Part shown: one piece after another, positions 4,568 through 23,758 of the stretch | Numbering within the stretch: the first letter of the stretch is position 1 | How the letters are laid out: each line of letters opens with the position of its first letter | Virus record (IMG/VR): IMGVR_UViG_3300031884_000002 | Span: 186,001 to 250,000 of that record | Direction: 5' to 3' (one strand) | Length of the DNA stretch: 64,000 nt | Notes under the pieces: generated by a model | Told to the model about the DNA's origin: nothing | The model's database searches: none | What the model saw: the letters and a program-made list of their open reading frames with translations, nothing else | Translations under genes and position numbers: made by a program

Positions 4568-5275
4568 TTAAATTATACATTTTCCATTAGCACAGCTTGC
4601 TTCGGCAGTATGTTGTGTCTCGTCGTCGTCTTCTTCTAGTTTTTTATAATCGACCATAGACCAATTTTTTAACAACTCGTCAAACTTTGCATTTTCTTCA
4701 TCTGTTATAACGGCTTCCATAGGAGGCTGTTTGTAAATTTTATCACCCGTAAAAGGCAATAGAGAAACTGCGGTAAAATCCTTTTGATTATCAAATAAAA
4801 ACTTGGTAACATCATCCCACTCTTCATCTTTTACCATAACCGTACAACTAACACTGTGGTTTAATGGCTTAGTATTTACACTTGTAGTTCCAGAATTAAC
4901 CCAATTTTCTTGGGTTAATTTAATAAGTCTTAAATGTTCTATTGCCGATAAATCAGCTTTAATTTTTACATTTTCCGGAACTTCTATTGGAAATGTAATA
5001 ACATCATCCGTTTTATTTTCGCTCCAAACACTTTCTTCACAAGCATGTTCATTAAATAATTTAAAATATTTATATACATTATCTTCTTTATTAACTTGTA
5101 TTCTTCTAAGATAGCGCCTAGAATGATGTGGATGTATTCCGGATGCGGCTGATAAAACAATGCTATTAGTATTATGTGTTACTGTTCCATTTTTTAATTG
5201 ATAAGTATGCGTTTTATCAACTTCTATATCTACTGTTAATTTACGCATTCCAGTTTTTATTGATTTTATTTTCAT
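4568..5275 (-). CDS. nrdJ: Class II RNR fragment 3: 35-aa IntC plus 200-aa C-extein
   Basis: ..TVDIEVDKTHTYQLKNGTVTHN|TNSIVLSAASGIHP..YLRRIQ..HSVSCTV; terminal redox pair CANGKC. Confidence 0.9.
   Translation of the reverse strand: MKIKSIKTGMRKLTVDIEVDKTHTYQLKNGTVTHNTNSIVLSAASGIHPHHSRRYLRRIQVNKEDNVYKYFKLFNEHACEESVWSENKTDDVITFPIEVPENVKIKADLSAIEHLRLIKLTQENWVNSGTTSVNTKPLNHSVSCTVMVKDEEWDDVTKFLFDNQKDFTAVSLLPFTGDKIYKQPPMEAVITDEENAKFDELLKNWSMVDYKKLEEDDDETQHTAEASCANGKCII
5171..5275 (-). mobile_element. Split intein RNR-2, C-fragment (35 aa, +1 Thr)
   Basis: Block F (VDIEV) and block G (THN|T). Confidence 0.9.
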
Positions 5276-6270
5276 AATTTTATATTTGTATTTATCTGAT
5301 CTATAACTTGTTCTATCGTTTCGGTTATATTCTTTTTAAATTGTTTTTCTTTTACTCGTAATATGACATATTTTTTCGACTGTAGTAAAAACTCTTTGAC
5401 AATATCACGCTCTTTTATATGTTCCATGTTATGCCAATATTCCCCATCAAATTCTATTATGATATTGGATATTACAACATCTGGCACACAATATTTTAAA
5501 TTATATGGATTGTCCTCAAATACAATAACTTCCGAATTAGTAATTGGACATCCTCTAAACAAATACTTCAAATCATCCGATAACGACATATATAATAATT
5601 TTGAAAATTGTAATTGTGACTTCGACTCTCCAAAAAAACAATTCATTTTACTATCTATATATTCACGCCATTTTATTTTTCCATCCGTATCTCCATATTT
5701 ACAAATAAAAAAATTCAAATCTCTACTTTGATATTTTTTAACTAATTCCGTTGCCTCAATCAATGACTTTCCTTTTTTTAAAACCCAATCATCGACTTTC
5801 CTAACACATACTCGATTTCGCTTCCATTCTTCAATTTTAAATTTTGCATCGGCTCCATATATACGAACACAATTTTCCATATTTAAAGATGATTTTTTAG
5901 AATGTATATTCTTTATATTTTTTATATCATCTTCAGAATATCCATTCAACCTTAAAGATTCTTCCGACACCGATAATTTTCTATTTTTTTCTTTATATTT
6001 TTTAGTTCCATCGACTTCTCCGTATTTTTTAATATAATATGGCAACGTTCCTCTTGGTTTTAACTTTTCAGTATATTCTTTATATTTTTTAATACCGTCA
6101 CATTTTCCAAATTTAAATATATACATTCGTTCAGAATGAGTGCATGAATATGTCTTAAATCGCTTAGTTCCAATAATCAGTCCATATTTATGAATTAAAA
6201 ACCTCTTTAATCTTAATAATTTTGTGTTTTTAGTTTTCATTAAACGTGTATTAAACCATATATTACACAT
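5272..6270 (-). CDS. Free-standing Vsr-like/PD-(D/E)xK homing endonuclease between the halves of split intein RNR-2
   Basis: KYGxxxG repeats; VPDVV..IIIEFDGEYWH..ILRVKE; ATGA overlap with the IntC ORF. Confidence 0.85.
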   Translation of the reverse strand: MCNIWFNTRLMKTKNTKLLRLKRFLIHKYGLIIGTKRFKTYSCTHSERMYIFKFGKCDGIKKYKEYTEKLKPRGTLPYYIKKYGEVDGTKKYKEKNRKLSVSEESLRLNGYSEDDIKNIKNIHSKKSSLNMENCVRIYGADAKFKIEEWKRNRVCVRKVDDWVLKKGKSLIEATELVKKYQSRDLNFFICKYGDTDGKIKWREYIDSKMNCFFGESKSQLQFSKLLYMSLSDDLKYLFRGCPITNSEVIVFEDNPYNLKYCVPDVVISNIIIEFDGEYWHNMEHIKERDIVKEFLLQSKKYVILRVKEKQFKKNITETIEQVIDQINTNIKL

Positions 6271-6289
6271 GACTTAATACATATAAATA

Positions 6290-7138
6290 TCAGTCAAATG
6301 ATAAAATATCATCGTTTTTTTCTAGATTTCTCGCTTCTACATATCCCCGACCTTTAACTAAAAATTTATGATTTGGAGTAGTTGTAACAATAGTTCCATC
6401 ATCCATTTCCACATCTATAGTATCGGATACTCCATTTATATATAACTTTGTAATATATTGCCAATCATTATTCTCATCTTTAACCATAATCTTAGAAGTT
6501 ACAGGTAAAAATTGTTTTTCATTTAAATTTTCATAATCTTCTAATTTATATCCATTTATCTCAAACAATTCCGATAAAGTTTTATCTCCGATAGAAGTTT
6601 TTATAATAGTCTCGGGAACAACACAACCTTCAGGTTTTATACATGTAATTCTTGCCGCTTGATTTATGCCTATTTTCTTAGCCCATATTTTATTAGTTTC
6701 GACTGCTACTTTGGCAGATTGTTTCTGAAACTCTGGATTGAATAATATATCAGGATTATCCATCATTCCAGTTATAGAAACTCCTAATAATGCTTCGTTA
6801 TTTGACAATTCCTCGGAAGTATGTCCTAAATATGGAAATGAAGTATATCCAGCTTGTAAAGTTCCTATTAAAGTAGCCGCCCAAGTAGCGTCTTTAAACT
6901 TATCACTGGAAGTTATTTTTGCTCCATTTATGGAAGTTAAATTACACATTTGGAATCCACAACGCCCATCATCGGTTACTGGAATAAATGAAATTTCGAA
7001 GCAGTTATGTATTAAAATATTATTAGCAAAAAAATTATGATTATTCTTTACAGATATATCATATACATCTTCATTTGGACGAACCGTTATTTTTTTTATT
7101 TTAATTCTGGTAATTTTTTTATTCTGTTTTGTTTCCAT
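6290..7138 (-). CDS. nrdJ: Class II RNR fragment 2: IntC (45 aa) - extein (126 aa) - IntN (111 aa)
   Basis: VYDISVKNNHNFFANNILIHN|CFEISF..FQMCNLTSIN..LLGVSITG..TCIKPEG|CVVPET..TTPNHKF. Confidence 0.92.
   Translation of the reverse strand: METKQNKKITRIKIKKITVRPNEDVYDISVKNNHNFFANNILIHNCFEISFIPVTDDGRCGFQMCNLTSINGAKITSSDKFKDATWAATLIGTLQAGYTSFPYLGHTSEELSNNEALLGVSITGMMDNPDILFNPEFQKQSAKVAVETNKIWAKKIGINQAARITCIKPEGCVVPETIIKTSIGDKTLSELFEINGYKLEDYENLNEKQFLPVTSKIMVKDENNDWQYITKLYINGVSDTIDVEMDDGTIVTTTPNHKFLVKGRGYVEARNLEKNDDILSFD
6293..6625 (-). mobile_element. Split intein RNR-2, N-fragment (111 aa)
   Basis: Block A CVVPETII and block B TTTPNHKF, then stop. Confidence 0.9.
7004..7138 (-). mobile_element. 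Split intein RNR-1, C-fragment (45 aa, +1 Cys)
   Basis: VYDISV..HNFFANNILIHN|C. Confidence 0.92.
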
Positions 7139-7260
7139 AATTTTAATTCTTTTCTTAAACTACTTCCTGTTGTTAAATAATCTTTTATATTTCTAATTGT
7201 AATTATAGGATATTCCGTAAATATATCCTGTTTTCCTCTATCGTAAATATTATATGGGAT
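7096..7260 (-). pseudogene. Probable 3' remnant of a deleted endonuclease gene
   Basis: 54 stop-free codons with no ATG, filling the spacer between intein halves and overlapping the IntC start, as the intact nucleases do at the other three loci. Confidence 0.5.
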
Positions 7261-7268
7261 TTATAAAA

Positions 7269-8552
7269 TCAATTTATTTTTAATAAAATATCAGTCTCTG
7301 TCAAATCCTTTGCCTCTATCCATCCACGTCCCTCCACAAATACCTTATGGTCCGGAGTTAATTTCAGAACTTCTCCATTTTCTCCTTGGATTTCTAATAT
7401 TTCTGCATTTTCACGGGTTTTCATAGCCATTGTTATTTCATTATTTTCTAAAGAACGAGTTTCTATATTATATGATATTGCATCAAACTTTTCCCCGTTG
7501 TTGTATCGTTCTACCAATTCGTCTATTCTAATATCTCCTTTAGTAGTAGATACCAATGTATCTCCTGTTACACAAGGGTTTAATAATTGACGTTCATCGA
7601 CGACATAGAGAAATCCAGGTTCTCCAAATTGTTTTGTTTTTTCTATTAACAATTTAAATTCTTTGAATGTAGTTCTTCCACGGACAATGATGGCTGAATT
7701 ATTACTTCTGGCTCTCTGTGGATTTTTATCAAACCAGTTACCAGTTTTGGCATTCATCATTTCATCATCGTCTGCATCGAATATCACGCTACATGCACTT
7801 CTTCTAATTCCTCCACTTAAAACAGCATCGGCACAATGCATAAGTATATCATATGCATTTATAGGCTTAAGTCGTACTTGGTGGTCCTTTTCAATAATTT
7901 CATCTAATAATTCTTTTACTTTTTTATGACAATTTTTAAGTCCTTTATAACCGGGGGCTTTACCACCACCCGTTTTAAGTTTTGCTCCTTTTGGTCTTAT
8001 TTTACTATAATCAAATACAATTTTTCTTCCGGAATATGCTGTATTTTTAAAATAACAATTTAACAATGCTTCGATACTATCGGACCATCCTTCAATCGAA
8101 TCTTGTACTACATATGTAATAATAGTTCCAGTTTTATCGTTGGCATTTACCAATGCAGGAAGACGATTTAGAAATCGTTTAGTTAATCCAAATCCAATAC
8201 CAGTCCCACATAATAATGCATAAAAAGACTCCGCAAAAGCACGAATAGAATCTATATGTCTTACTCCGCAATTAAACATTCTACAGTTATGAGCTTCTAT
8301 AGCCTTTCCTCCAAATTGCATAGAACGCATAGAGGGAGTAACTTTCCGTTCACGTACAAAATCAAATGCTCTTACAATTTCCAATTTATCTTTTTCATTT
8401 AAAAAACTGTATTTTTTTAAATGCATTTTTTCTACTCTGGATACAGTTTCTTCCCATGTTTCTCTTCTCTTTTTCTTTTCTTCATATTTTGCATATTTTG
8501 TAGTAAAGGTGAAGTTTCCCATCTCATCTAACATATTTGGTATCTTATTCAT
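7269..8552 (-). CDS. nrdJ: Class II (B12-dependent, monomeric-type) RNR fragment 1: 326-aa N-extein plus 101-aa IntN
   Basis: RRETWEETV, PSMRSMQFGG, RMFNC, FDYSKIRPKG, VLSGGIRRSA, GEPG..NP|CVTGDT. Confidence 0.92.
   Translation of the reverse strand: MNKIPNMLDEMGNFTFTTKYAKYEEKKKRRETWEETVSRVEKMHLKKYSFLNEKDKLEIVRAFDFVRERKVTPSMRSMQFGGKAIEAHNCRMFNCGVRHIDSIRAFAESFYALLCGTGIGFGLTKRFLNRLPALVNANDKTGTIITYVVQDSIEGWSDSIEALLNCYFKNTAYSGRKIVFDYSKIRPKGAKLKTGGGKAPGYKGLKNCHKKVKELLDEIIEKDHQVRLKPINAYDILMHCADAVLSGGIRRSACSVIFDADDDEMMNAKTGNWFDKNPQRARSNNSAIIVRGRTTFKEFKLLIEKTKQFGEPGFLYVVDERQLLNPCVTGDTLVSTTKGDIRIDELVERYNNGEKFDAISYNIETRSLENNEITMAMKTRENAEILEIQGENGEVLKLTPDHKVFVEGRGWIEAKDLTETDILLKIN
7272..7574 (-). mobile_element. 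Split intein RNR-1, N-fragment (101 aa)
   Basis: Block A CVTGDTLV and block B LTPDHKVF, then stop. Confidence 0.92.
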
Positions 8553-8611: not shown

Positions 8612-9073
8612 TTATTCTCCTTTGGATTTATTCCATTTTTTACGGATTATATCTTTTTGAGCTTCTTCTTGACCTTTGAGTTTATTAATAAGTTCCATAC
8701 CTTCGATAGAAGCCATCTCATACATTCCAAGTCTCCCAGTAGCTGCATCCAAATCACAAATATAACTACTACCATCGGGACCAAATCGATTTTTAATAAT
8801 ATGGAACTTAGCAGTATTAGTAAGTTTATTATCCATTGTTCTTGCTTGAGAAGCTACAAAATCAGAAGTCATTAACTTCTTATATGATTCCGCCATGTCA
8901 TCTCCTTCAATAATATCATTCTGAGCGGCACTATTATGCGTATAAATATCATTAGCAAAAAACATATGAGTATCATCTACTGTAATATCAATAGTTTCTT
9001 GATCTCCTATACACTCAATACTAACAATTTCATCAAGGTTAAATTCTTCTGTGTTTAATTTATGTTCTTTCAT
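8612..9073 (-). CDS. Replicative helicase C-fragment: 47-aa IntC plus 106-aa C-extein
   Basis: TIDITVDDTHMFFANDIYTHN|SAAQ..MAESYKK..IIKNRFGPDG (DnaB-family KNRxG motif). Confidence 0.9.
   Translation of the reverse strand: MKEHKLNTEEFNLDEIVSIECIGDQETIDITVDDTHMFFANDIYTHNSAAQNDIIEGDDMAESYKKLMTSDFVASQARTMDNKLTNTAKFHIIKNRFGPDGSSYICDLDAATGRLGMYEMASIEGMELINKLKGQEEAQKDIIRKKWNKSKGE
8933..9073 (-). mobile_element. Split intein helicase, C-fragment (+1 Ser)
   Basis: Blocks F and G ending THN|S. Confidence 0.9.
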
Positions 9074-10118
9074 AATATTTATTTACAAATCTAATACATT
9101 TTTTAATTACTTTTTCTTTATTTTTAAGATATTCTTCTTCTGGAATTCTTAATATTTTATATCCTAATGATATTAAAAATAAATCTCTTCGCTTATCTTT
9201 TTCTATGATGGATGGGAAGGAATGCCAATAACTACCATCAAACTCTATTATAGCATTCCCACATTTAAAATCAACATAAATTAAGTTTAATCCATATTTT
9301 CCATTGGCAAAAAATGATTGTTCTTTATTATAGGTAAAATACTTTACCAATTCTTTTTGTTTAGATACTAATTTAGATGTTATATTATTAAACAACTCTT
9401 GTGATATTTTGCTGTATGGATTACTTTTACCTCTACAATTAGAAACCATTTTTTCTATATGGTTATAATATTTCTCAACCCCTTCAATCGAACCAAACCT
9501 TTCAATAAATCCTATTAGTGACAATGTATGATTTCTTTTATCATATGATGCCCTCCAACGTTTATATCCATCTTCTACTCCCCATTTACTTTGAAATTCC
9601 GGCAGCGTCCTTCCATTTTTCCATTTTCCTTTTTGCTTTCGTTTCTCAATTCCAAGTTTCCAATTTTTTAAATATTTCTCCCATTTTATTTTACCCTCTT
9701 CTTTTCCATATTTTTTAATATATCCATCCAATCCTAAATTAGATATTTTTCTTTTAGATATTATTTCTTTTTGTTCCACTGTATAATTTTGATTTCGTGC
9801 TGTAATTTTTTTATTTTGCTCCTCAAATATTTGTTTGCCGATTAAATCACCATATCTATGTTGTAATGATGCTAATGAAAATCCATCTTTTCCGAATTTT
9901 TTCGATTCGGTCAACCTCTTTACCCAACTTCCATCAACATTATATTTTAATAATTTAACTATCATTTCTTTTTTTATATTTCTAATATAATTTTTATTAA
10001 ATATTTTTATTATACTATCAATTTCCAATAAAGAGTGATTAGTTAAAATTGCCTTAAATGGAGCCGCAAATTTTTGTGATAAAAAATGTTCTCTATTTTT
10101 GTAATATAATTCTTTCAT
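9060..10118 (-). CDS. Free-standing Vsr-like homing endonuclease between the helicase intein halves
   Basis: KYG/KWG/RFG repeats; YVDFKC..IIEFDGSYWH..GYKILRIPE; same family as 5272..6270. Confidence 0.85.
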   Translation of the reverse strand: MKELYYKNREHFLSQKFAAPFKAILTNHSLLEIDSIIKIFNKNYIRNIKKEMIVKLLKYNVDGSWVKRLTESKKFGKDGFSLASLQHRYGDLIGKQIFEEQNKKITARNQNYTVEQKEIISKRKISNLGLDGYIKKYGKEEGKIKWEKYLKNWKLGIEKRKQKGKWKNGRTLPEFQSKWGVEDGYKRWRASYDKRNHTLSLIGFIERFGSIEGVEKYYNHIEKMVSNCRGKSNPYSKISQELFNNITSKLVSKQKELVKYFTYNKEQSFFANGKYGLNLIYVDFKCGNAIIEFDGSYWHSFPSIIEKDKRRDLFLISLGYKILRIPEEEYLKNKEKVIKKCIRFVNKYYERT

Positions 10119-10151
10119 ATTATATAAATATGGACCGTAACCACAAAAACA

Positions 10152-11501
10152 TCATTTTTTAGTAAATAATTTATCTCCTATAGATAAGCCACTTATAATA
10201 CTTTTTAGTTTTTCATATTGTGTTGGAAACCTATGATTTTCAGAACATTCTATAATTTTACCACTTTTCAATGTAATTCTATACACTGGTTGTTTTTTAA
10301 CAGGATATATATAAGATACTTTTCTATATCCGTTATGTGTTAATATCTTATCTCCAACTATTATATTTTTGATTTTAATATTACCTTTAAGTTCTTCGTT
10401 CACAATAGTTTGTAAAGACAAACACCGATTAGCCTGAGAGACCGACCAACCGGCTATTTGGAGTGACCCTAATACAGACCTGACCTCTTCGCTTTTTGCC
10501 CCGGCATCTTCATATGATTTAGAACCTTTGGGTGCAGTCGAAGATAATAACAAATCCACATAGTCAACTACCCACATATCAATATGAATACCGGTGACAA
10601 TTTGAAGATGTTCGGTAAATGCTTTTAAAGTATCAGCCGTAGCTGTTTTTAATGGAAAATATTTAATGTATAAAGTGCCAGCCCCATTAGCCTTCGTAGC
10701 ATCCAACGCTACTTTTATTTTAGCCTTATTTGCTTGACGTTCTTGAAATGGAATGCCAGATAAATAAGAATCATATCTGTGACCAGTATAATCAGCACTT
10801 AATTCCATGGTAAAATGAAGAACATTTTTTCCTTGTTTAAGTGCTTCCGCTCCAAAATTAACCAATGTCCAGCTTTTACATCCACCGGGATTTCCACATA
10901 TAATACCCAATTCTCCCTTTCCCAATCCGCCATCCATCAATTTATCTAAAATTGGTTGATTTGTTTTTATTGTGTATCGAGTATCTTTAGACGACCTAGT
11001 TTCAAAACTCTCAAAATAATTTTCCCCAATATCTCTATCCATTCCAGCTTTAAGAGCTTCATCTAACTTTAATTTAATAGTATCAAACTTTTGATTTTTA
11101 AGAAGTTCTAATGAATCTGCAATTGCCGATTTTAATTTTTGATGCTTACAAAACTCTAAAAACTTATCCTTAACATACGTTAAATCGGTAGCAGATGCAT
11201 TTTTAAAAGCGGATAATAACTGGGATTTTACCGCCATTTGAAGGGTACTATCAGAAATTAAATTACATTCTTGTCCCAAAATCATCATAGTAGGAGTATC
11301 TTTATACTGTTTCCAGTGGTCTATGATTTTGGAAACTATCCATTTTTGTTGGTCGGTATCAAAAAAATCAGGAGTTAATATATCATATATTCTCTCCAAA
11401 AAAGCCCTATCTGAAATTAGAACTGAAATTACTTTTGCTTGAAACTCTTTTTCATATTGTCGGGATGCTAACGTATCTACTTTATTATATTCTTCATTCA
11501 T
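10152..11501 (-). CDS. Replicative helicase (T4 gp41/DnaB-like) N-fragment: 359-aa extein plus 90-aa IntN
   Basis: GGLGKGEL..GNPGGCKS, HFTMEL, VVDYVDLL, SQANR|CLSLQT..CSENHRFPT. Confidence 0.9.
   Translation of the reverse strand: MNEEYNKVDTLASRQYEKEFQAKVISVLISDRAFLERIYDILTPDFFDTDQQKWIVSKIIDHWKQYKDTPTMMILGQECNLISDSTLQMAVKSQLLSAFKNASATDLTYVKDKFLEFCKHQKLKSAIADSLELLKNQKFDTIKLKLDEALKAGMDRDIGENYFESFETRSSKDTRYTIKTNQPILDKLMDGGLGKGELGIICGNPGGCKSWTLVNFGAEALKQGKNVLHFTMELSADYTGHRYDSYLSGIPFQERQANKAKIKVALDATKANGAGTLYIKYFPLKTATADTLKAFTEHLQIVTGIHIDMWVVDYVDLLLSSTAPKGSKSYEDAGAKSEEVRSVLGSLQIAGWSVSQANRCLSLQTIVNEELKGNIKIKNIIVGDKILTHNGYRKVSYIYPVKKQPVYRITLKSGKIIECSENHRFPTQYEKLKSIISGLSIGDKLFTKK
10155..10424 (-). 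mobile_element. Split intein helicase, N-fragment (90 aa)
   Basis: Block A CLSLQT and block B CSENHRF; resembles gp41-type split inteins as I recall them. Confidence 0.9.
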
Positions 11502-14580: not shown

Positions 14581-15858
14581 TTATTCTTCTGATTTTGATT
14601 CAGTAATAGGAGGAACTTCCTCTGATACTTCTTCAATGTCTTCCACAATTTTAGAATTAGGGTCTCTATAATTCATAATATAATCATTACAAATCACTTG
14701 ATAAAACTCTTCTTTAAGATCTTTATCAGAGTTCATAAGTTCTACAAACTTAGAAGTATTAAACTCCAATGATTCTCCATTTGCTCTTTTCCATGTATAT
14801 TTAGCAGCAGTTCCAGTTATAATTCCACGCTCTTTTGAGAAATTAAGCCAACTTGCCAAATCTTGGATACCGGAATCATAATGGATTTCAAATTGTGCTC
14901 CTCGTGCTCCCGGTCCCATTCTACTCTTAATAACTTGACAAGTACATTTTACTCCAATTACTTCATCATTTTTCTTCAATTTTCCAATGGTTCCCATTCT
15001 TACTCTGGTAGAACACGCATAACTTAAAGATTTTCCACCGGGAGTAGTCCATTTGTCTCCGAATGGACCTGCATTCATATTAAATCTTAATTGATTAGTA
15101 AATACAATCAGGATTCTTTGTTTAGCAATAAGACCGGTTATTTTTCGGAATGCCTTTCCTAAGATTAGGGATTTTCCTGTATTATATCCATCAATCCCAT
15201 GTTCTGCTTCAAGTTCTTTTTCGATAGTAGCTTGTGCTACTGAATCAATAAAAATAGTTAATAATTTATCTTTATTTGCTTTTCTAAAAGCACCTATACA
15301 AGTTTCTATATGTGTAAATAAATCTTCCAATGTTGTAAATGGAACATAATTTGTATTTTTAACATTTACTCCAAGCGCAGTCCAAAACTTTCTATCAACT
15401 GCAAACTCAGAATCAAAAAATACACTATATCCACCAAGTTTACTTGTTTCTGCAATAATATGAGCGCACATTAAAGATTTACCGGTGTTATGATTTAGCA
15501 TCCCATTTCCAAAATAACAATGTTCTGGATGTTCGACCGTAATATCTACAATTTTATATTTTCCAATTAAAGCAACTGATAATACTATACTATAAGTTTC
15601 ATCATCACATAAAATACTATGTTTATTAGGGATTATATCTTTACATTCTACCCATCCAGAATTTGTAAAAAACTTATGTTCTCGACTCACTTTTATAGTT
15701 TTTCCATTATCTAATGTTACTAAATATGTATCCAATATACCTTTATTAACAAATCTGGTTATTTTTGTATATTCACCATTCAATGTTTTTACTTTTATGG
15801 TTTTTCCTTCTTTAAGGAGAGAATCTACTTCTCCTACAGTTATTATTTTTTTATTCAT
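14581..15858 (-). CDS. recA: RecA/UvsX C-fragment: 124-aa IntC plus 301-aa C-extein
   Basis: ..VSREHKFF..IVDITVEHPEHCYFGNGMLNHN|TGKSL..FFDSE..IFIDSVA..FTNQLR..TTPGGKSL. Confidence 0.9.
   Translation of the reverse strand: MNKKIITVGEVDSLLKEGKTIKVKTLNGEYTKITRFVNKGILDTYLVTLDNGKTIKVSREHKFFTNSGWVECKDIIPNKHSILCDDETYSIVLSVALIGKYKIVDITVEHPEHCYFGNGMLNHNTGKSLMCAHIIAETSKLGGYSVFFDSEFAVDRKFWTALGVNVKNTNYVPFTTLEDLFTHIETCIGAFRKANKDKLLTIFIDSVAQATIEKELEAEHGIDGYNTGKSLILGKAFRKITGLIAKQRILIVFTNQLRFNMNAGPFGDKWTTPGGKSLSYACSTRVRMGTIGKLKKNDEVIGVKCTCQVIKSRMGPGARGAQFEIHYDSGIQDLASWLNFSKERGIITGTAAKYTWKRANGESLEFNTSKFVELMNSDKDLKEEFYQVICNDYIMNYRDPNSKIVEDIEEVSEEVPPITESKSEE
15487..15858 (-). mobile_element. Atypically split intein RecA, long C-fragment (blocks B, F, G; +1 Thr)
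   Basis: Block B SREH and terminal HN|T in one ORF; block A absent. Confidence 0.9.
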
Positions 15859-16940
15859 ATAATATTTCTTTTTAATTTTTCTAAATTTTTATTGTCTATT
15901 ATTATTTTACCAGAATTTATAAGAGTCGATATAAAATTAATATCATATTTTGATATGTCAATATCATTCTCCGTCAAATACCCTCCATATTTTAAATTAA
16001 ATCTGGAACAATATTCTTTTAATGCCTCTGATTTTAACACATTTAATCTAATTGGCAACATATTATATGGTTTTATTTCATAAATCGAATTTCCTATTAC
16101 TATATCAGGACAGTATGTTCGACCAATTCCCATATCATCTTTATATTTTATTCTATGTTTTGATATTTGGAATGTAATATTGTTAAAAATCAAATGACAC
16201 ATTATTCGCAATTCTAATGAAGATCTACAAAAATATTTTATTCCATCGTTTAATATCCAACACTTAACTCCAATTCCTGCATTTTTTCCGGGCGATTTAC
16301 CATACATCGGATTTAACCGTCCGGTTTGTGGATTATTTTTAGGATATCCGTATTTTTCACATAATTGCTTGCATTTTACACTTCCAAATCCAAATTCATT
16401 CTTCAATGTATTATAAACTTGCTGTTTATATTTTAACTTATGTTTTAATTCCTCAAATCTCTTTATGATTTTTGAGGTAATTGGTTTTAATTCTACTCCC
16501 CGTGTAATTGGTATTGCTTTTCTTCCGTTTATCTTAGACTGTATATTAATATAATTTTTAGAATTCTCTTTTCTCTGTATATCTAAATTTTTATATTTTA
16601 AAAAATATAAAACTTGCTTATGCGAAATATTTTTCATTATGTTTTTAACATCTTGTAATATTCCTCCATTATTAATGGATTCCAATACTAACATTCCATA
16701 TATTTTATCTAATTCTATAAGTTTTATATTTCTTTTAGCAAGCGCATATTCACTAAGTTGATTTGATTTATATTTAATGTTATTATATTTTAATTTATCA
16801 ACTAAATTAAATTCATTTGCAATTCTCCTAATAGGCTTTCTTCCAATTTTTAATTGGAAGATTTCCGTTTCGCTTAAACCATCGTGTATAGATGATATAA
16901 TCGTGTCTATTGTCTGTGCATCTGTTACTTTTTTAGCCAT
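15855..16940 (-). CDS. Free-standing endonuclease, TnsA-like PD-(D/E)xK, between the RecA intein halves
   Basis: NPMYGK motif; CRSSLE..IKYKD..RTYCPDIVI..YEIKP; ATGA overlap with the IntC ORF. Confidence 0.75.
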   Translation of the reverse strand: MAKKVTDAQTIDTIISSIHDGLSETEIFQLKIGRKPIRRIANEFNLVDKLKYNNIKYKSNQLSEYALAKRNIKLIELDKIYGMLVLESINNGGILQDVKNIMKNISHKQVLYFLKYKNLDIQRKENSKNYINIQSKINGRKAIPITRGVELKPITSKIIKRFEELKHKLKYKQQVYNTLKNEFGFGSVKCKQLCEKYGYPKNNPQTGRLNPMYGKSPGKNAGIGVKCWILNDGIKYFCRSSLELRIMCHLIFNNITFQISKHRIKYKDDMGIGRTYCPDIVIGNSIYEIKPYNMLPIRLNVLKSEALKEYCSRFNLKYGGYLTENDIDISKYDINFISTLINSGKIIIDNKNLEKLKRNII

Positions 16941-16987
16941 AATATTTAATATTGGTAATATAATATAAATATCAGGCTACATAAAAA

Positions 16988-17305
16988 TTATTCAATAATA
17001 ACTTCAATTAAAGTATCTTCCGTAACACAGCCTTCTAATCCTGATAATTCGGTCACTCTACCTACAGGTAGACCTCCGTGTGCTCTATTAGAAATTGCCA
17101 AATCTAATAAAGTTGAACCGGTTGATACCCATTCTTTTATTTCGGATGGATTATCATCTTCATCTACGAAATATGCTACTTTGGTTCCATCTTTAGATGC
17201 CTTATTCATTGCGGTTTGTAGCAACAACGCTAAATCATCTCTATTAACATTAGACTCTACTTCTACATGTTTTGATTTTGTATTTATATTTTTTTCTTTT
17301 GCCAT
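16988..17305 (-). CDS. recA: RecA/UvsX N-fragment: 92-aa extein plus 13-aa IntN
   Basis: VSTGSTLLDLAIS..GGLPVGRVTELSGLEG|CVTEDTLIEVIIE*. Confidence 0.9.
   Translation of the reverse strand: MAKEKNINTKSKHVEVESNVNRDDLALLLQTAMNKASKDGTKVAYFVDEDDNPSEIKEWVSTGSTLLDLAISNRAHGGLPVGRVTELSGLEGCVTEDTLIEVIIE
16991..17029 (-). mobile_element. Atypically split intein RecA, 13-aa N-fragment
   Basis: Block A only (CVTEDTLI), then TAA. Confidence 0.85.
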
Positions 17306-19902: not shown

Positions 19903-21252
19903 TTAAAATTGCAATTGAAGACTTCCATATGAATCTCCAATATAGCTTTTAACTGGAAATATGGAATTAAACGACATAATTTTTACAACTTCATCCAATA
20001 CTTCTTCCCCATCTGGGATATAAAAATCATATAGAATTGAATCATATGTATATAATATTGGCATCGTTTTTTTATTCTTCAAATATTCTTCCACTAAATT
20101 AAGTCGGGAAATTGCAAGTTCTCCTTCAAATGCTTGTAAAATATAATTAAATAATTTATATGGATTTGGGTCTAATATATGCTTGGTTGTTATTTTTCGA
20201 TTAAATATAGGGGTTAGAATATATCCATTAGATTTGAAAAACTCCCATTTATCAAACACATAAGTTTTTAAGTTTGATAAATATTTTATATGAGAATATT
20301 TATCTTCGATACCGCCATAAAGTTGTCTAAATGTGATTCGTTTGGCTTCTTTTATTTCGTCTACGGATATATTTTGTTTTTGAAAATATAATTTTGCCAA
20401 ATATTCATAAATATCGATTGAAGTATCCAATGTATAATTAGTCAGATAACATATTATACGAGGATGAAATGCACTGTAATCCACCAATGCCATTTTACCA
20501 TCTTTTCCATATCTGGAAATAAACTTATCTCTGGTTCCATCGAAATTATTCAGTGCTGCAAAATTGATATTGTTAAACTTATTAGATGGTCTTCCAGTTG
20601 AAGTGTATAAATTATATTCACTATATATAATATTATTGACTGGATATTGTGAATATTGTTTATAATATAACTCTCTATCTACATATATTCCATTTTTTTC
20701 AATTCTGGATAATGCCGGAATAATATTATTATTTATACTATTAAAAGCAATATCTAAGTTAGAAGAGTTAATCAACGGGTTAATATCAATCCATATATCT
20801 TCAAACATTTCCAAATGTTTTAATATCGGTATTGTTTGATTTAACTTCCCAATATTATCGTATGTTCGATAAATAAAATCATGCGCCGATGTTGAATAAT
20901 CGGTTAATTTTAAAATTTCATTATCGTTTAAATAAGAGGATAAATTTATATCATATACATTCTTACAATTCAATAGTTGGATAAATGATTTTTTATCAAT
21001 TACCCATTTTATGTTTTCCGATGACAATATAAATTGTAAAAACTGTATTTTTAATTCGGTTGATAAAGAAGAATCTGGATGATTTATAGATATATAATAA
21101 GTCATCTCTGATTTTATATGTTTAATAAAAATTACACTTATTTTATTTTCAGCCGAATGTAATTTATAGTCGATTGGAATAATATGAATTGCCAATGCAT
21201 CCGTTCCTATAGAACTGATGAACCGTTCAAAATCTAATTTATTTTCAATCAT
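19903..21252 (-). CDS. Compact family A DNA polymerase-like protein
   Basis: TSTGRPS, motif A VDYSAFHPR, motif B EAKRITFRQLYG, NYILQ, motif C LYTYDS. Confidence 0.75.
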   Translation of the reverse strand: MIENKLDFERFISSIGTDALAIHIIPIDYKLHSAENKISVIFIKHIKSEMTYYISINHPDSSLSTELKIQFLQFILSSENIKWVIDKKSFIQLLNCKNVYDINLSSYLNDNEILKLTDYSTSAHDFIYRTYDNIGKLNQTIPILKHLEMFEDIWIDINPLINSSNLDIAFNSINNNIIPALSRIEKNGIYVDRELYYKQYSQYPVNNIIYSEYNLYTSTGRPSNKFNNINFAALNNFDGTRDKFISRYGKDGKMALVDYSAFHPRIICYLTNYTLDTSIDIYEYLAKLYFQKQNISVDEIKEAKRITFRQLYGGIEDKYSHIKYLSNLKTYVFDKWEFFKSNGYILTPIFNRKITTKHILDPNPYKLFNYILQAFEGELAISRLNLVEEYLKNKKTMPILYTYDSILYDFYIPDGEEVLDEVVKIMSFNSIFPVKSYIGDSYGSLQLQF

Positions 21253-21295
21253 TGAACGGACATAGTATCAGAACTGATTAAAAACTCAAGTATTT

Positions 21296-23758
21296 TTAAA
21301 CGGGAAGAAGACCAATTTTTGTTCGAACTCCGTTTCGGAGTGGAATTACTCCAGCCGTGATTGTAGTCGTCCATTTTCCGGCTTCTATATTTTCAGTAAT
21401 ATTTGTTATTCTAAATATAATATTTGTTTCACTATATGGTTCAGGAAGACCTCGAACTAAAAACATCATAAATGTTCGTAACCCACCTATACCTTGAATA
21501 GTAAAAGTAGCTTGTATACCGGGCATTATTCCAACATACGTTGGATTATTATCATAATCTCCATCGTCCATTAACATATTAACAACATCAGATGCGGGAA
21601 GTACTAGTCGTCGTATAATAGTTTTATCATCGGAAACCGTAGTTAATTGAAACATTTCAGGAGTTGCCGATAAAGTTTGTAAATCCTTCATCAATGTAAT
21701 TCCATCGTTTTTTGGTTTATCATTTTTTACATCGTTGGAGTTTTTGATGGAATCATCTAAAAATAATCGGTCTCTAAACATATAGTCTAATAATTCATTA
21801 GTTCCATTATTTGATTTTGTATCGGCGTTTTTTCGTATATTAGTAGCCGCATATAATGAACGTATCGCTTGACCCGAACTAATAGTAGGCTTAAACTCCA
21901 TTCCTGTCAAGATTGAATTATCTGTCATATATTCAAATATAAATGGAGTCCCTACATTATCAGGAATATATTTAGTATCGATTATTTTCATAGTCGATTG
22001 ATTTCCATCTGGAACGGGATTTCCGGTTGAAGATACTAATCTAAAATCCCAGAAATTTCCACATGCTGAACTTATAGAAGACATCATTTTATCTATTAAA
22101 TCAGTATAAGTAATAATTCCATCATCATGCACTAATTTTTTAAGAAAATTAACATTTACATATAAATTTTTTAAATATCCATTTTCAAAAGTTCCAGTTC
22201 TTACCGTTGGAAACTCACATATGGAATCCACCGGAGAAACTCCATTGTTATATCTTCCACTGTTAATAAGTTCATCTAAATTATCTCGATATGTCCCTCC
22301 CAATTGAATACATACATGATATAACCTTTTGTCGGCGGCATCTTCATTTTGAGGTTTAATAAAATTAGAACATATTGATAATTGTGTTATATCATCATTT
22401 GATATATTATTTGTAGCTTGTGCATCCTGTCCATAAAAATATTTAGGTGCAAATGTATTGGGAATCAATAATATTCCACCATCGCTCGATATCATGTTTT
22501 TATGCCCAGTTATTAAAATGTCATCTATGTCAATTCTAAAAAACTCTCCTCCACTAATAGTCGAATAATCCACATTACAATAATTAAATATTTCAATGAT
22601 AAGTCCTAAGTTAATCCACGTATTTGCCAAGGGAGAAGTTATATCAAAATCATCTTCCCTATGTACGAACGTATTTATGAGATTGTTTTCAGAGTTAATA
22701 TCTCTTCCATAAAATATACCATAAAGATATTCTTTCCAATTATCTTCATGTTTCTGTTTTAAATATTTTATGAACTTATTCAAAAATACTTCATCCGATG
22801 TTTCAGGAGTTCCTTTATGAAGATTGCTGTTTTTGTCAATTACGGATTTTAATAAATCTATTCTCTCATCTACGAAATCAATTAAACTTCCGAATGGCAA
22901 TTTTGCATTGGATGTATTTGAAGTCGTATCTTTCCCATCGCTATCAACCGGAACATCTTCAGTAGTGGAATTAATTATCAATCCCGAATACATTCTATCT
23001 CTGGAAGAAATTTCAGTCATACACTTAATGGTAGTTCCTTCGACTGACCAATTAAAATTACTAACTGTTCCAAGCATTACGTCGTAATTTCCATTTGAAC
23101 CTAAAATATTCTGTGTATATAGTGGATATGGGTCTCGGAATAATGTATTTAAATTTGGAACACTGGTTACATCTATCAAATTCATAGGATTAAAATTATT
23201 CCATCCCCATTCCAATACAAATGTTATAGAAGGAACTAAAAAATAAGGAGTCATATATTCCAATTGTGCTCTGGAAAAACAAACCCAATTTATAGTTGCC
23301 TTTCTATATAATTCATGTTGAATAATTATATTTATACTTTCAATTTGAGGGCTGGGAACTTGAATTGGATATGTAGAAGTTCTATTATTATTTATTAGAG
23401 TATGTGGAGTAAATGAGGAATTAGGCTGAAATCCTATAATACTTTCATTGTATCCGCTAGTTCTGGAAAATCCATAAGTGCTAAAAAAATCAGAAGGAGA
23501 TGCTAATATAAATCCGGGTTTATTTGCGTTTACACCGGTTTCCATACCTTGTCCGTTACTTGTAACTCTAATCCACGGAGTTTGTGGTCCTCTATATTTA
23601 GACCAATTTCCAGTAGTATTACCCCAATCCCCATTATTAGCATTTACATAATTCAATCCTCTATTATCACCTTCTCTTCTTGTTAATTCTGATTGTATTT
23701 GAATTGGGATGTTACATGGATACCATGGAATCAAATTTGGAATCGAAGTTATTGACAT
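21296..23758 (-). CDS. Putative baseplate hub/tail-associated protein
   Basis: 820 aa; LEWGW and FRITNITENIEAGKWTTTI hub-like ending; downstream of tape measure and LysM-like genes. Confidence 0.55.
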   Translation of the reverse strand: MSITSIPNLIPWYPCNIPIQIQSELTRREGDNRGLNYVNANNGDWGNTTGNWSKYRGPQTPWIRVTSNGQGMETGVNANKPGFILASPSDFFSTYGFSRTSGYNESIIGFQPNSSFTPHTLINNNRTSTYPIQVPSPQIESINIIIQHELYRKATINWVCFSRAQLEYMTPYFLVPSITFVLEWGWNNFNPMNLIDVTSVPNLNTLFRDPYPLYTQNILGSNGNYDVMLGTVSNFNWSVEGTTIKCMTEISSRDRMYSGLIINSTTEDVPVDSDGKDTTSNTSNAKLPFGSLIDFVDERIDLLKSVIDKNSNLHKGTPETSDEVFLNKFIKYLKQKHEDNWKEYLYGIFYGRDINSENNLINTFVHREDDFDITSPLANTWINLGLIIEIFNYCNVDYSTISGGEFFRIDIDDILITGHKNMISSDGGILLIPNTFAPKYFYGQDAQATNNISNDDITQLSICSNFIKPQNEDAADKRLYHVCIQLGGTYRDNLDELINSGRYNNGVSPVDSICEFPTVRTGTFENGYLKNLYVNVNFLKKLVHDDGIITYTDLIDKMMSSISSACGNFWDFRLVSSTGNPVPDGNQSTMKIIDTKYIPDNVGTPFIFEYMTDNSILTGMEFKPTISSGQAIRSLYAATNIRKNADTKSNNGTNELLDYMFRDRLFLDDSIKNSNDVKNDKPKNDGITLMKDLQTLSATPEMFQLTTVSDDKTIIRRLVLPASDVVNMLMDDGDYDNNPTYVGIMPGIQATFTIQGIGGLRTFMMFLVRGLPEPYSETNIIFRITNITENIEAGKWTTTITAGVIPLRNGVRTKIGLLPV

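Follow-up and report, generated by a model that had tools for sequence, protein, structure and literature searches.

A predicted class II ribonucleotide reductase of an uncultivated phage, encoded in three pieces by a gene carrying two split inteins

Introduction

Can one enzyme be encoded by a natural gene in three pieces, so that its polypeptide chain would be completed only by two protein trans-splicing reactions? This question is raised by the nrdJ locus of the uncultivated phage genome IMGVR_UViG_3300031884_000002 (353,772 bp), of which a stretch of 64,000 nucleotides (nt; positions 186,001 to 250,000 of the record), here called the window, was analyzed. At window positions 4568-8552, three fragments of a ribonucleotide reductase (RNR) gene are bordered by the N-terminal (IntN) and C-terminal (IntC) halves of two inteins. 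The initial annotation of the locus, made from the sequence alone, stated that phage genes fractured into two pieces had been described before, and this is borne out by the set reported by Dassa et al. (2009; PMC2677866), comprising NrdJ-1 and NrdJ-2, NrdA-1 to NrdA-7, gp41-1 to gp41-9 and IMPDH-1, all of which are described as 'fractured in two'; in this layout a free-standing GIY-YIG or Vsr-like endonuclease gene lies between the halves. In the following, the caret marks a splice junction or insertion point, and related loci are designated by our own L numbers.

Results

Genetic composition of the fractured nrdJ locus

The region is filled by four co-oriented minus-strand open reading frames (ORFs), three of which specify nrdJ fragments and one an endonuclease (Table 1). 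The layout of IntN and IntC parts given in the initial annotation was recovered with every length and position correct, and removal of the intein parts by script reproduced the sum of 326+126+200 = 652 amino acids (aa). That annotation was nevertheless incomplete, as it omitted the Vsr-like gene at 5272-6270, the ORF-less 130-nt gap between fragments 1 and 2 (gap 1) and the neighbouring dnaB and recA/uvsX genes with their split inteins. Every extein and every intein half is free of frameshifts and internal stop codons, and the intein halves belong to separate translation units with their own stop codons and ATG starts, which is the same in three assemblies. The endonuclease gene, located in the interval between fragments 2 and 3 (gap 2), starts 19 nt past the fragment-2 stop, and its own stop codon overlaps the start codon of fragment 3 (ATGA), which suggests translational coupling, and no Shine-Dalgarno-like sequence is evident upstream of the start codons of any of the four ORFs. 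The three-piece anatomy is far beyond chance.

Identity of the reductase and the rebuilt junctions

The class II RNR domains RNR_Alpha and RNR-II_ins_dom were detected by Pfam alongside Intein_splicing matches in fragment 1 (E 5e-12) and at both ends of fragment 2 (E 2e-13). Moreover, a single phage RNR profile of 701 positions, phrog_367, was matched consecutively by fragments 1, 2 and 3 at positions 31-388, 397-521 and 520-696. The best match of all three exteins among solved structures is the L. leichmannii enzyme RTPR (PDB 1L1L), a single chain of 739 aa, to which fragment 1 aligns at residues 25-379, a profile from 14 middle pieces at residues 408-554 and fragment 3 at residues 542-737, with phmmer E-values of 5e-14 to 6e-6 at low identity. 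The Cys of the NPCxE motif, the Cys of the CNL motif and the C-terminal Cys-pair region align between 1L1L and the window exteins, SCANGKC of the window falling on CEGGAC; the Cys of FQMCNL (C65) is invariant across the 14 middle pieces, and an equivalent of 1L1L Cys119 was not located in the N-extein. These data uphold the annotated continuity of the class II motifs once the inteins are removed, and by them the locus is predicted to encode a monomeric class II (adenosylcobalamin-type) ribonucleotide reductase of the RTPR/NrdJ type.

The +1 residue of junction 1, which directly follows the HN of IntC1, falls on position 408 of 1L1L, which is the thiyl-radical cysteine of that enzyme. The earlier proposal that this junction uses the radical Cys of NPCxE as its +1 residue thus agrees with the structural alignment. 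An alignment of the in-silico spliced chain to intact NrdJ, named in the annotation as a check, gave a colinear match with the contiguous enzyme of Roseobacter phage CRP-4 (gp24; NPCSEI, KPSGTVS), and the chain is likewise colinear with NrdJ of Pseudaeromonas phage KLEP7. The closest IMG/VR relatives, L007, L008 and L009, have an uninterrupted nrdJ with extein identities of 74-82%. Across sites 1 and 2 the intein-free relatives read VVDE.QLLNPCFEISFIP and TCIKPEGTNSIVLSAAS, matching the predicted spliced product residue for residue; the predicted junctions LLNP^CFEI and KPEG^TNSI equal the uninterrupted L007 and L008 genes over at least 10 residues. The active-site loop NPCFEISFIP is continuous in L007 and L008 and would be rebuilt in the window only by splicing.

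Properties of the two split inteins

Both inteins contain the complete class 1 set, namely the block A Cys1, the block B TxxH, the block F Asp, the block G His-Asn and a +1 Cys or Thr, with the motifs C..LTPDH..VYDIS..IHN^C in intein 1 and C..TTPNH..VDIEV..THN^T in intein 2. Their combined sizes of 101+45 and 111+35 amount to 146 aa each, which is typical of a mini-intein. Across 14 middle pieces, H44, N45, C172, T254 and H257 are invariant and C46 is invariant or nearly so. Matches to PF14890 and to the PDB inteins NrdJ-1, DnaB, DnaE and gp41-1 establish HINT-domain homology of the halves; IntN1 matched the NrdJ-1 intein (PDB 8UBS) at E 1e-10 and IntC1 at E 1e-7, or 1e-16 with a profile.

The two IntN sequences of the window are 34% identical. 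A comparison of five multi-piece genomes revealed that the inteins cluster by insertion site and not by genome, inteins of the same site being 33-56% identical and those of different sites 22-38%; as identity is higher within than between sites, the inteins are, on present comparisons, three allelic families occupying sites 0, 1 and 2. Selection on the halves was examined in two diverged three-piece phages, L001 and L090, for which non-synonymous (pN) and synonymous (pS) divergence are reported in place of the substitution-rate ratio dN/dS, synonymous sites being saturated (pS ~0.77). The pN values of the intein halves (IntC1 0.21, IntN2 0.25, IntC2 0.035) are no higher than those of the exteins (0.18 and 0.31), by which measure the intein halves appear to be kept by selection and not to be drifting.

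Occurrence of multi-piece nrdJ genes in related phages

Fragment 2 was searched against 5.8 billion proteins, clustered at 90% identity, and at least 13 clusters of 253-316 aa were found to share its IntC-extein-IntN layout at 34-50% identity. A profile search of a 50%-identity representative library yielded about 8-11 such middle pieces among the best 150 matches, which also include many longer proteins with cis-inteins upstream and IntN2 at the end. Complete three-piece loci are present in L001 (Logan ERR3663020) and in L002/L003 (JGI 3300028569 and ENA), with an endonuclease-like ORF in both gaps. Four-piece nrdJ genes with three split inteins were detected in two unrelated metagenomic phages, at 2063-6609 of L010 (IMGVR_UViG_3300009451_000004) and at 2585-7179 of L089 (Logan SRR12825371), with the N-extein carrying the third intein at LL(G)G^[TC]G(V/T)G. 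In the partial three-piece locus L016 (3115-4011), the middle piece combines an NrdJ-1-type IntC (..TYDIQTPNQNFFANGVLVHN^SEI) with a site-2 IntN at its end, and the protein P0079 likewise has an NrdJ-1-type IntC (HN^SEI) and a terminal IntN2. The occurrence of both elements on one piece indicates that, in nature, relatives of the tool intein NrdJ-1 would operate alongside a second split intein.

Other relatives carry a split intein at site 1 only (L022, L088) or at site 2 only (L013), and cis-inteins are found in L044 and L011, so that nrdJ exists in related phages in one, two, three or four pieces, with no site, site 1, site 2, both or three sites occupied. In the extein tree, the window is sister to the intein-free L007/L008 (supports 100/100 and 98/95), and a separate clade (100/100) unites L010 with four pieces, L002 with three, L013 with site 2 only and L022 with site 1 only. 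Given this tree position apart from the L010/L002 clade, the three-piece state may either have been gained independently by homing or have been lost repeatedly by precise deletion, and both routes would fit mobile inteins driven by free-standing endonucleases. Taken together, the doubly fractured nrdJ gene is real, recurrent and constrained. A DNA-level search of GenBank phages revealed no relative, a single 68-nt match being at chance level, and in a tblastn comparison with 50,697 phage records no isolate covered 80% or more of the middle piece.

Several further arrangements were observed among the relatives. A large cis-intein occupies site 1 of L011 (2907-7698); it contains a LAGLIDADG-type insert and terminates in ..GITAAR^C rather than in HN. 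In the same locus, a split intein (KPSGNA^C ... SHN^S) lies at a site 2b, two residues downstream of window site 2, with a GIY-YIG-like gene between its halves. For sites 1/1b and for sites 2/2b there are two alternative registers each, offset by one or two residues. The N-extein of L030 (2780-6239) is broken at ..AVISGG by a 338-aa LAGLIDADG-like ORF that lacks intein motifs and is either intron-borne or a free-standing endonuclease gene splitting nrdJ in the manner of Aeh1. In the cultured KLEP7 (L004, OM654377), nrdJ is annotated as two coding sequences with a break at 1144-1380, exactly at NP^C, filled by ~200 nt that encode no intein. The window, the KLEP7 insert and L030 yielded no Rfam match and hence no recognisable group I intron. 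The Campylobacter phage nrdA was considered as a double split-intein case and rejected, since it is really a cis-intein in the C-terminal NrdA piece beside Hef endonucleases and not a clear case.

Proposed assembly of the enzyme and alternative explanations

Two sufficiently unrelated mini-inteins would have entered the nrdJ gene of the window at conserved positions, one at NP^C, the place of the thiyl-radical cysteine (site 1), and one at KPEG^T (site 2), and each of them has since been split into separately translated halves. The co-oriented gene string would give rise to three polypeptides, in which IntN1 pairs with IntC1 and IntN2 with IntC2, each pair forming one HINT domain. Canonical class 1 splicing, from the Cys1 thioester through transesterification to the +1 Cys or +1 Thr to Asn cyclisation, would then release a single NrdJ with the native junctions LLNP-CFEI and KPEG-TNSI. 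The middle fragment having the form IntC1-X-IntN2, the two inteins would have to be orthogonal, since otherwise the middle piece would be cyclised or skipped. The Vsr-like endonuclease gene located in gap 2 would be the selfish element responsible for the breaking of intein 2 and for its spread; the counterpart of this gene in gap 1 was probably lost in the window or, alternatively, never acquired. That two orthogonal trans-splicing reactions yield a single enzyme of 652 aa is the most likely reading of the locus, to which we assign a probability of about 0.8.

Several points weigh against this reading. Pairing specificity, ligation and enzyme activity are deduced from sequence, in the window as in all multi-piece relatives. 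Intein 2 has Thr at the +1 position, where this residue acts as a weaker nucleophile than Cys or Ser. The net charge is -9 in both IntN halves and +4/+5 in both IntC halves, and this common polarity cannot account for orthogonality. Synonymous saturation bars a proper dN/dS estimate. Expression signals were not recognisable: a promoter and terminator scan was uninformative, promoter-like sites being no commoner than in shuffled sequences (20 against 26 expected). Finally, Campylobacter phage nrdA genes with inteins and endonucleases have been interpreted as degenerating (Dwivedi 2013, PMC3653736), by analogy with which an intein-ridden RNR gene may not always be functional.

Four other explanations were considered. 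Split intein halves bind each other tightly and might in principle serve as mere dimerisation handles without splicing, the fragments assembling non-covalently. A functional RNR formed from separate NrdA halves without ligation is described for Aeromonas phage Aeh1 (PMC3045599). This explanation is unlikely for the window, where Cys1, TxxH, HN and the +1 nucleophile have all been kept across homologues at 35-50% identity, which would be unexpected if binding alone mattered. Moreover, junction 1 lies in the NPCxE loop, so that unspliced fragments would retain an intein of ~146 aa at the radical site, and NrdJ-1, to which IntN1 and IntC1 show homology, is proven to splice fast.

It is quite unlikely that the locus represents a decaying relic, that is, a gene colonised by selfish elements that no longer yields a working reductase in a phage dependent on the deoxynucleoside triphosphate supply of its host. 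The same Campylobacter nrdA provides a precedent (PMC3653736), and no other RNR gene was noticed in the window that would bear on the dependence of the phage on nrdJ. However, the reading frames of exteins and intein halves are intact, the junctions match intact orthologues, and those catalytic Cys residues that were located, together with the C-terminal Cys pair region, have been preserved. Non-synonymous divergence remains far below the saturated synonymous divergence in exteins and inteins alike, and the architecture persists over deep divergence.

The IntC-X-IntN topology of the middle fragment equals the split-intein design used by engineers for cyclisation. Cross-pairing might accordingly belong to the biology of the system, IntC1 with IntN2 giving a cyclised middle extein and IntN1 with IntC2 an N+C product, and this competition setting the amount of active enzyme; the shared charge polarity of both inteins would be in keeping with it. 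We consider this very improbable, as the co-resident inteins belong to separate site-specific families only 22-38% identical, an identity comparable to that reported for mutually orthogonal pairs of engineered libraries (PMC7090010), and as dead-end products would be selected against in a constrained enzyme.

An assembly or sequencing artefact concealing a gene with two cis-splicing inteins or none is effectively refuted despite the metagenomic source, since the 353,772-bp record and two further, independent assemblies from other samples (353,817 and 353,725 bp), with different contig starts, agree at 100% identity over the 3,985 nt, 19 contigs carry an identical middle piece, each IntC piece has its own ATG, the same layout recurs in unrelated samples and sequence lineages, and neither gap can be a single-base error, gap 1 being 130 nt of non-coding sequence and gap 2 a complete 332-aa gene.

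Endonuclease genes and neighbouring fractured genes

The endonuclease of the window nrdJ locus was assigned to Pfam DUF559 (23.0 bits, cut-off 20.6), with MTES_1575 below its cut-off, and is a paralogue of the endonuclease of the dnaB locus (26% identity, E 1e-17). Its comparison with PDB sequences gave no match at E<=1, and kinship with I-Bth0305I could not be shown. The endonuclease families vary by locus: DUF559/Vsr-like genes are present in the window, L001, L002 and L013, a GIY-YIG-like gene in L011 and an HNH gene in L089. Gap 1 contains an endonuclease-like ORF of 245-279 aa in L001, L002, L010, L022 and L088, which in L001, L010 and L022 belongs to a family of PD-(D/E)xK appearance, and it lacks an endonuclease gene in the window (130 nt) and in L089 (25 nt). 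A hairpin like those upstream of the endonuclease genes of fractured genes was sought in gap 1 of the window, and its RNA fold was no better than that of shuffled sequences (z -0.07).

Two further fractured genes were observed on the minus strand of the window. The adjoining DnaB/gp41-type helicase gene (8612-11501) is likewise fractured by a split intein, and the recA/uvsX gene (14581-17305) is split within the P-loop by an atypically split intein, which resembles the atypical split site of the terminase described by Dassa et al. (PMC2677866). Inspection of the DNA polymerase ORFs (19903-23758) revealed no additional intein.

Table 1. Features of the fractured nrdJ locus and of two neighbouring fractured genes (window positions)
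Feature	Position	Strand	Description
Fragment 1	7269-8552	minus	427 aa; N-extein 326 aa + IntN1 101 aa; stop 7269-7271
NrdJ N-extein	7575..8552	minus	326 aa; C-terminal end ..DERQLLNP; Pfam RNR_Alpha, RNR-II_ins_dom
IntN1	7272..7574	minus	101 aa; begins CVTGDTLV; block B LTPDH (LTPDHKVF); Pfam Intein_splicing
Spacer, fragments 1/2	7139..7268		130 nt; without ORF or homing endonuclease gene
Fragment 2	6290-7138	minus	282 aa; own ATG at 7138; IntC1 + extein + IntN2; stop 6290-6292
IntC1	7004..7138	minus	45 aa; ..DVYDISVKNNHNFFANNILIHN; last residues NNILIHN; Pfam intein profile positions 112-155
NrdJ middle extein	6626..7003	minus	126 aa; CFEI...CIKPEG; first Cys = predicted thiyl-radical Cys
IntN2	6293..6625	minus	111 aa; begins CVVPETII; block B TTPNH (TTPNHKFL)
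Vsr-like (DUF559) homing endonuclease gene	5272..6270	minus	332 aa; free-standing, between fragments 2 and 3
Fragment 3	4568-5275	minus	235 aa; own ATG at 5275; IntC2 35 aa + C-extein 200 aa
IntC2	5171..5275	minus	35 aa; MKIKSIK...LTVDIEVDKTHTYQLKNGTVTHN (...VDIEVDKTHTYQLKNGTVTHN); last residues GTVTHN; near IntC2 of L089, L002, L010
NrdJ C-extein	4571..5170	minus	200 aa; TNSIVL...SCANGKCII; stop 4568-4570
DnaB N part + IntN	10152-11501	minus	ends ..SQANR^CLSLQTIV
dnaB-locus Vsr-like/DUF559 endonuclease gene	9060-10118	minus	
DnaB IntC + C part	8612-9073	minus	..DIYTHN^SAAQ
RecA/UvsX N ORF	16988-17305	minus	105 aa; ends ..SGLEG^CVTEDTLIEVIIE; IntN only 13 aa
RecA/UvsX middle ORF	15855-16940	minus	361 aa; PD-(D/E)xK-like motif
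RecA/UvsX C ORF	14581-15858	minus	425 aa; first ~125 aa = intein blocks after block A, ending GMLNHN^TGKS

Discussion

The inteins gp41-1, NrdJ-1 and IMPDH-1, all derived from fractured phage genes, have become workhorses of protein engineering. To join three or more fragments, inteins without cross-reactivity are required, and at present their combinations are found by trial. If the proposed assembly is true, nature supplies ready-made orthogonal sets, including NrdJ-1-type partners, for one-pot multi-fragment ligation, as a gene that works only while two or three co-expressed inteins stay orthogonal offers sets that are pre-tested. With both pairs of the same charge polarity, the locus also provides a system to ask what sets pairing specificity. 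It would show, moreover, how far an essential enzyme can be colonised by selfish elements without loss of the gene, and the full range of occupancy states among the relatives allows the gain and loss of inteins and endonucleases, as well as the 'gene breaking' pathway put forward in 2009, to be followed directly.

The locus belongs to the known class of fractured genes by virtue of the free-standing endonuclease gene in gap 2. Site 2 has the exact layout described by Dassa et al. (2009), with split intein halves around a free-standing Vsr-like endonuclease gene on one strand, and site 1, lacking an endonuclease gene, corresponds to the 'endonuclease lost' stage represented there by gp41-7 (PMC2677866), as does gap 1 of L089. 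The locus departs from that set in that nrdJ is broken in three in the window and in four in L010 and L089, so that one window polypeptide starts with an IntC and finishes with an IntN that is not its cognate. The insertion site differs as well, as NrdJ-1 and NrdJ-2 reside at NPC^S (PMC2677866), one residue C-terminal of the classic NP^C that is occupied in the window; NrdJ-1 is thus inserted after the radical Cys with a +1 Ser, and the window intein before it with a +1 Cys. NrdJ-1 (PDB 8UBS/9OMB), described as a fast natural trans-splicer and a widely used tool, is homologous to intein 1 and interrupts the same active-site loop of the same enzyme, where splicing is predicted for the window.

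The RNR genes of phages are a hot spot of mobile elements and may comprise three or four ORFs (Dwivedi 2013, PMC3653736), as exemplified by the intron-joined pieces of nrdE in Brochothrix phage A9 and by the multi-ORF nrdD of phiAS4, which was left unexplained (PMC3653736). In contrast to the intron-joined genes, the pieces of the window would be joined by two trans-splicing events at the protein level. The window also differs from Aeh1 NrdA, described as intein-free (PMC3045599), in that every break in the window lies between complete intein halves.

In dnaE of Trichodesmium, a single split intein occurs together with cis-inteins; tandem trans-splicing is needed only by a gene with two or three split inteins. 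In the literature, with few subscription journals covered, we found no natural gene broken by two or three split inteins, and tandem trans-splicing occurs there only in engineered form. The initial annotation was likewise aware of no natural enzyme in three pieces that needs two trans-splicing events. The arrangement is not confined to the window, as it recurs in many metagenomic phages, in four pieces too. We lean slightly towards regarding these loci as the first natural enzyme that would require three polypeptides, or four in L010 and L089, to be tandem trans-spliced by inteins of distinct families selected in vivo for mutual orthogonality. The engineered tandem systems (PMC7210297, PMC7090010, PMC11271493) follow the same logic, with three fragments, two orthogonal split inteins and an IntC-X-IntN middle piece. 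Whereas these designs mix inteins of different sources, the set of the window is natural, resides in one gene and appears to be kept by selection, so that the locus looks like a natural, so far undescribed form of the tandem splicing devised by engineers.

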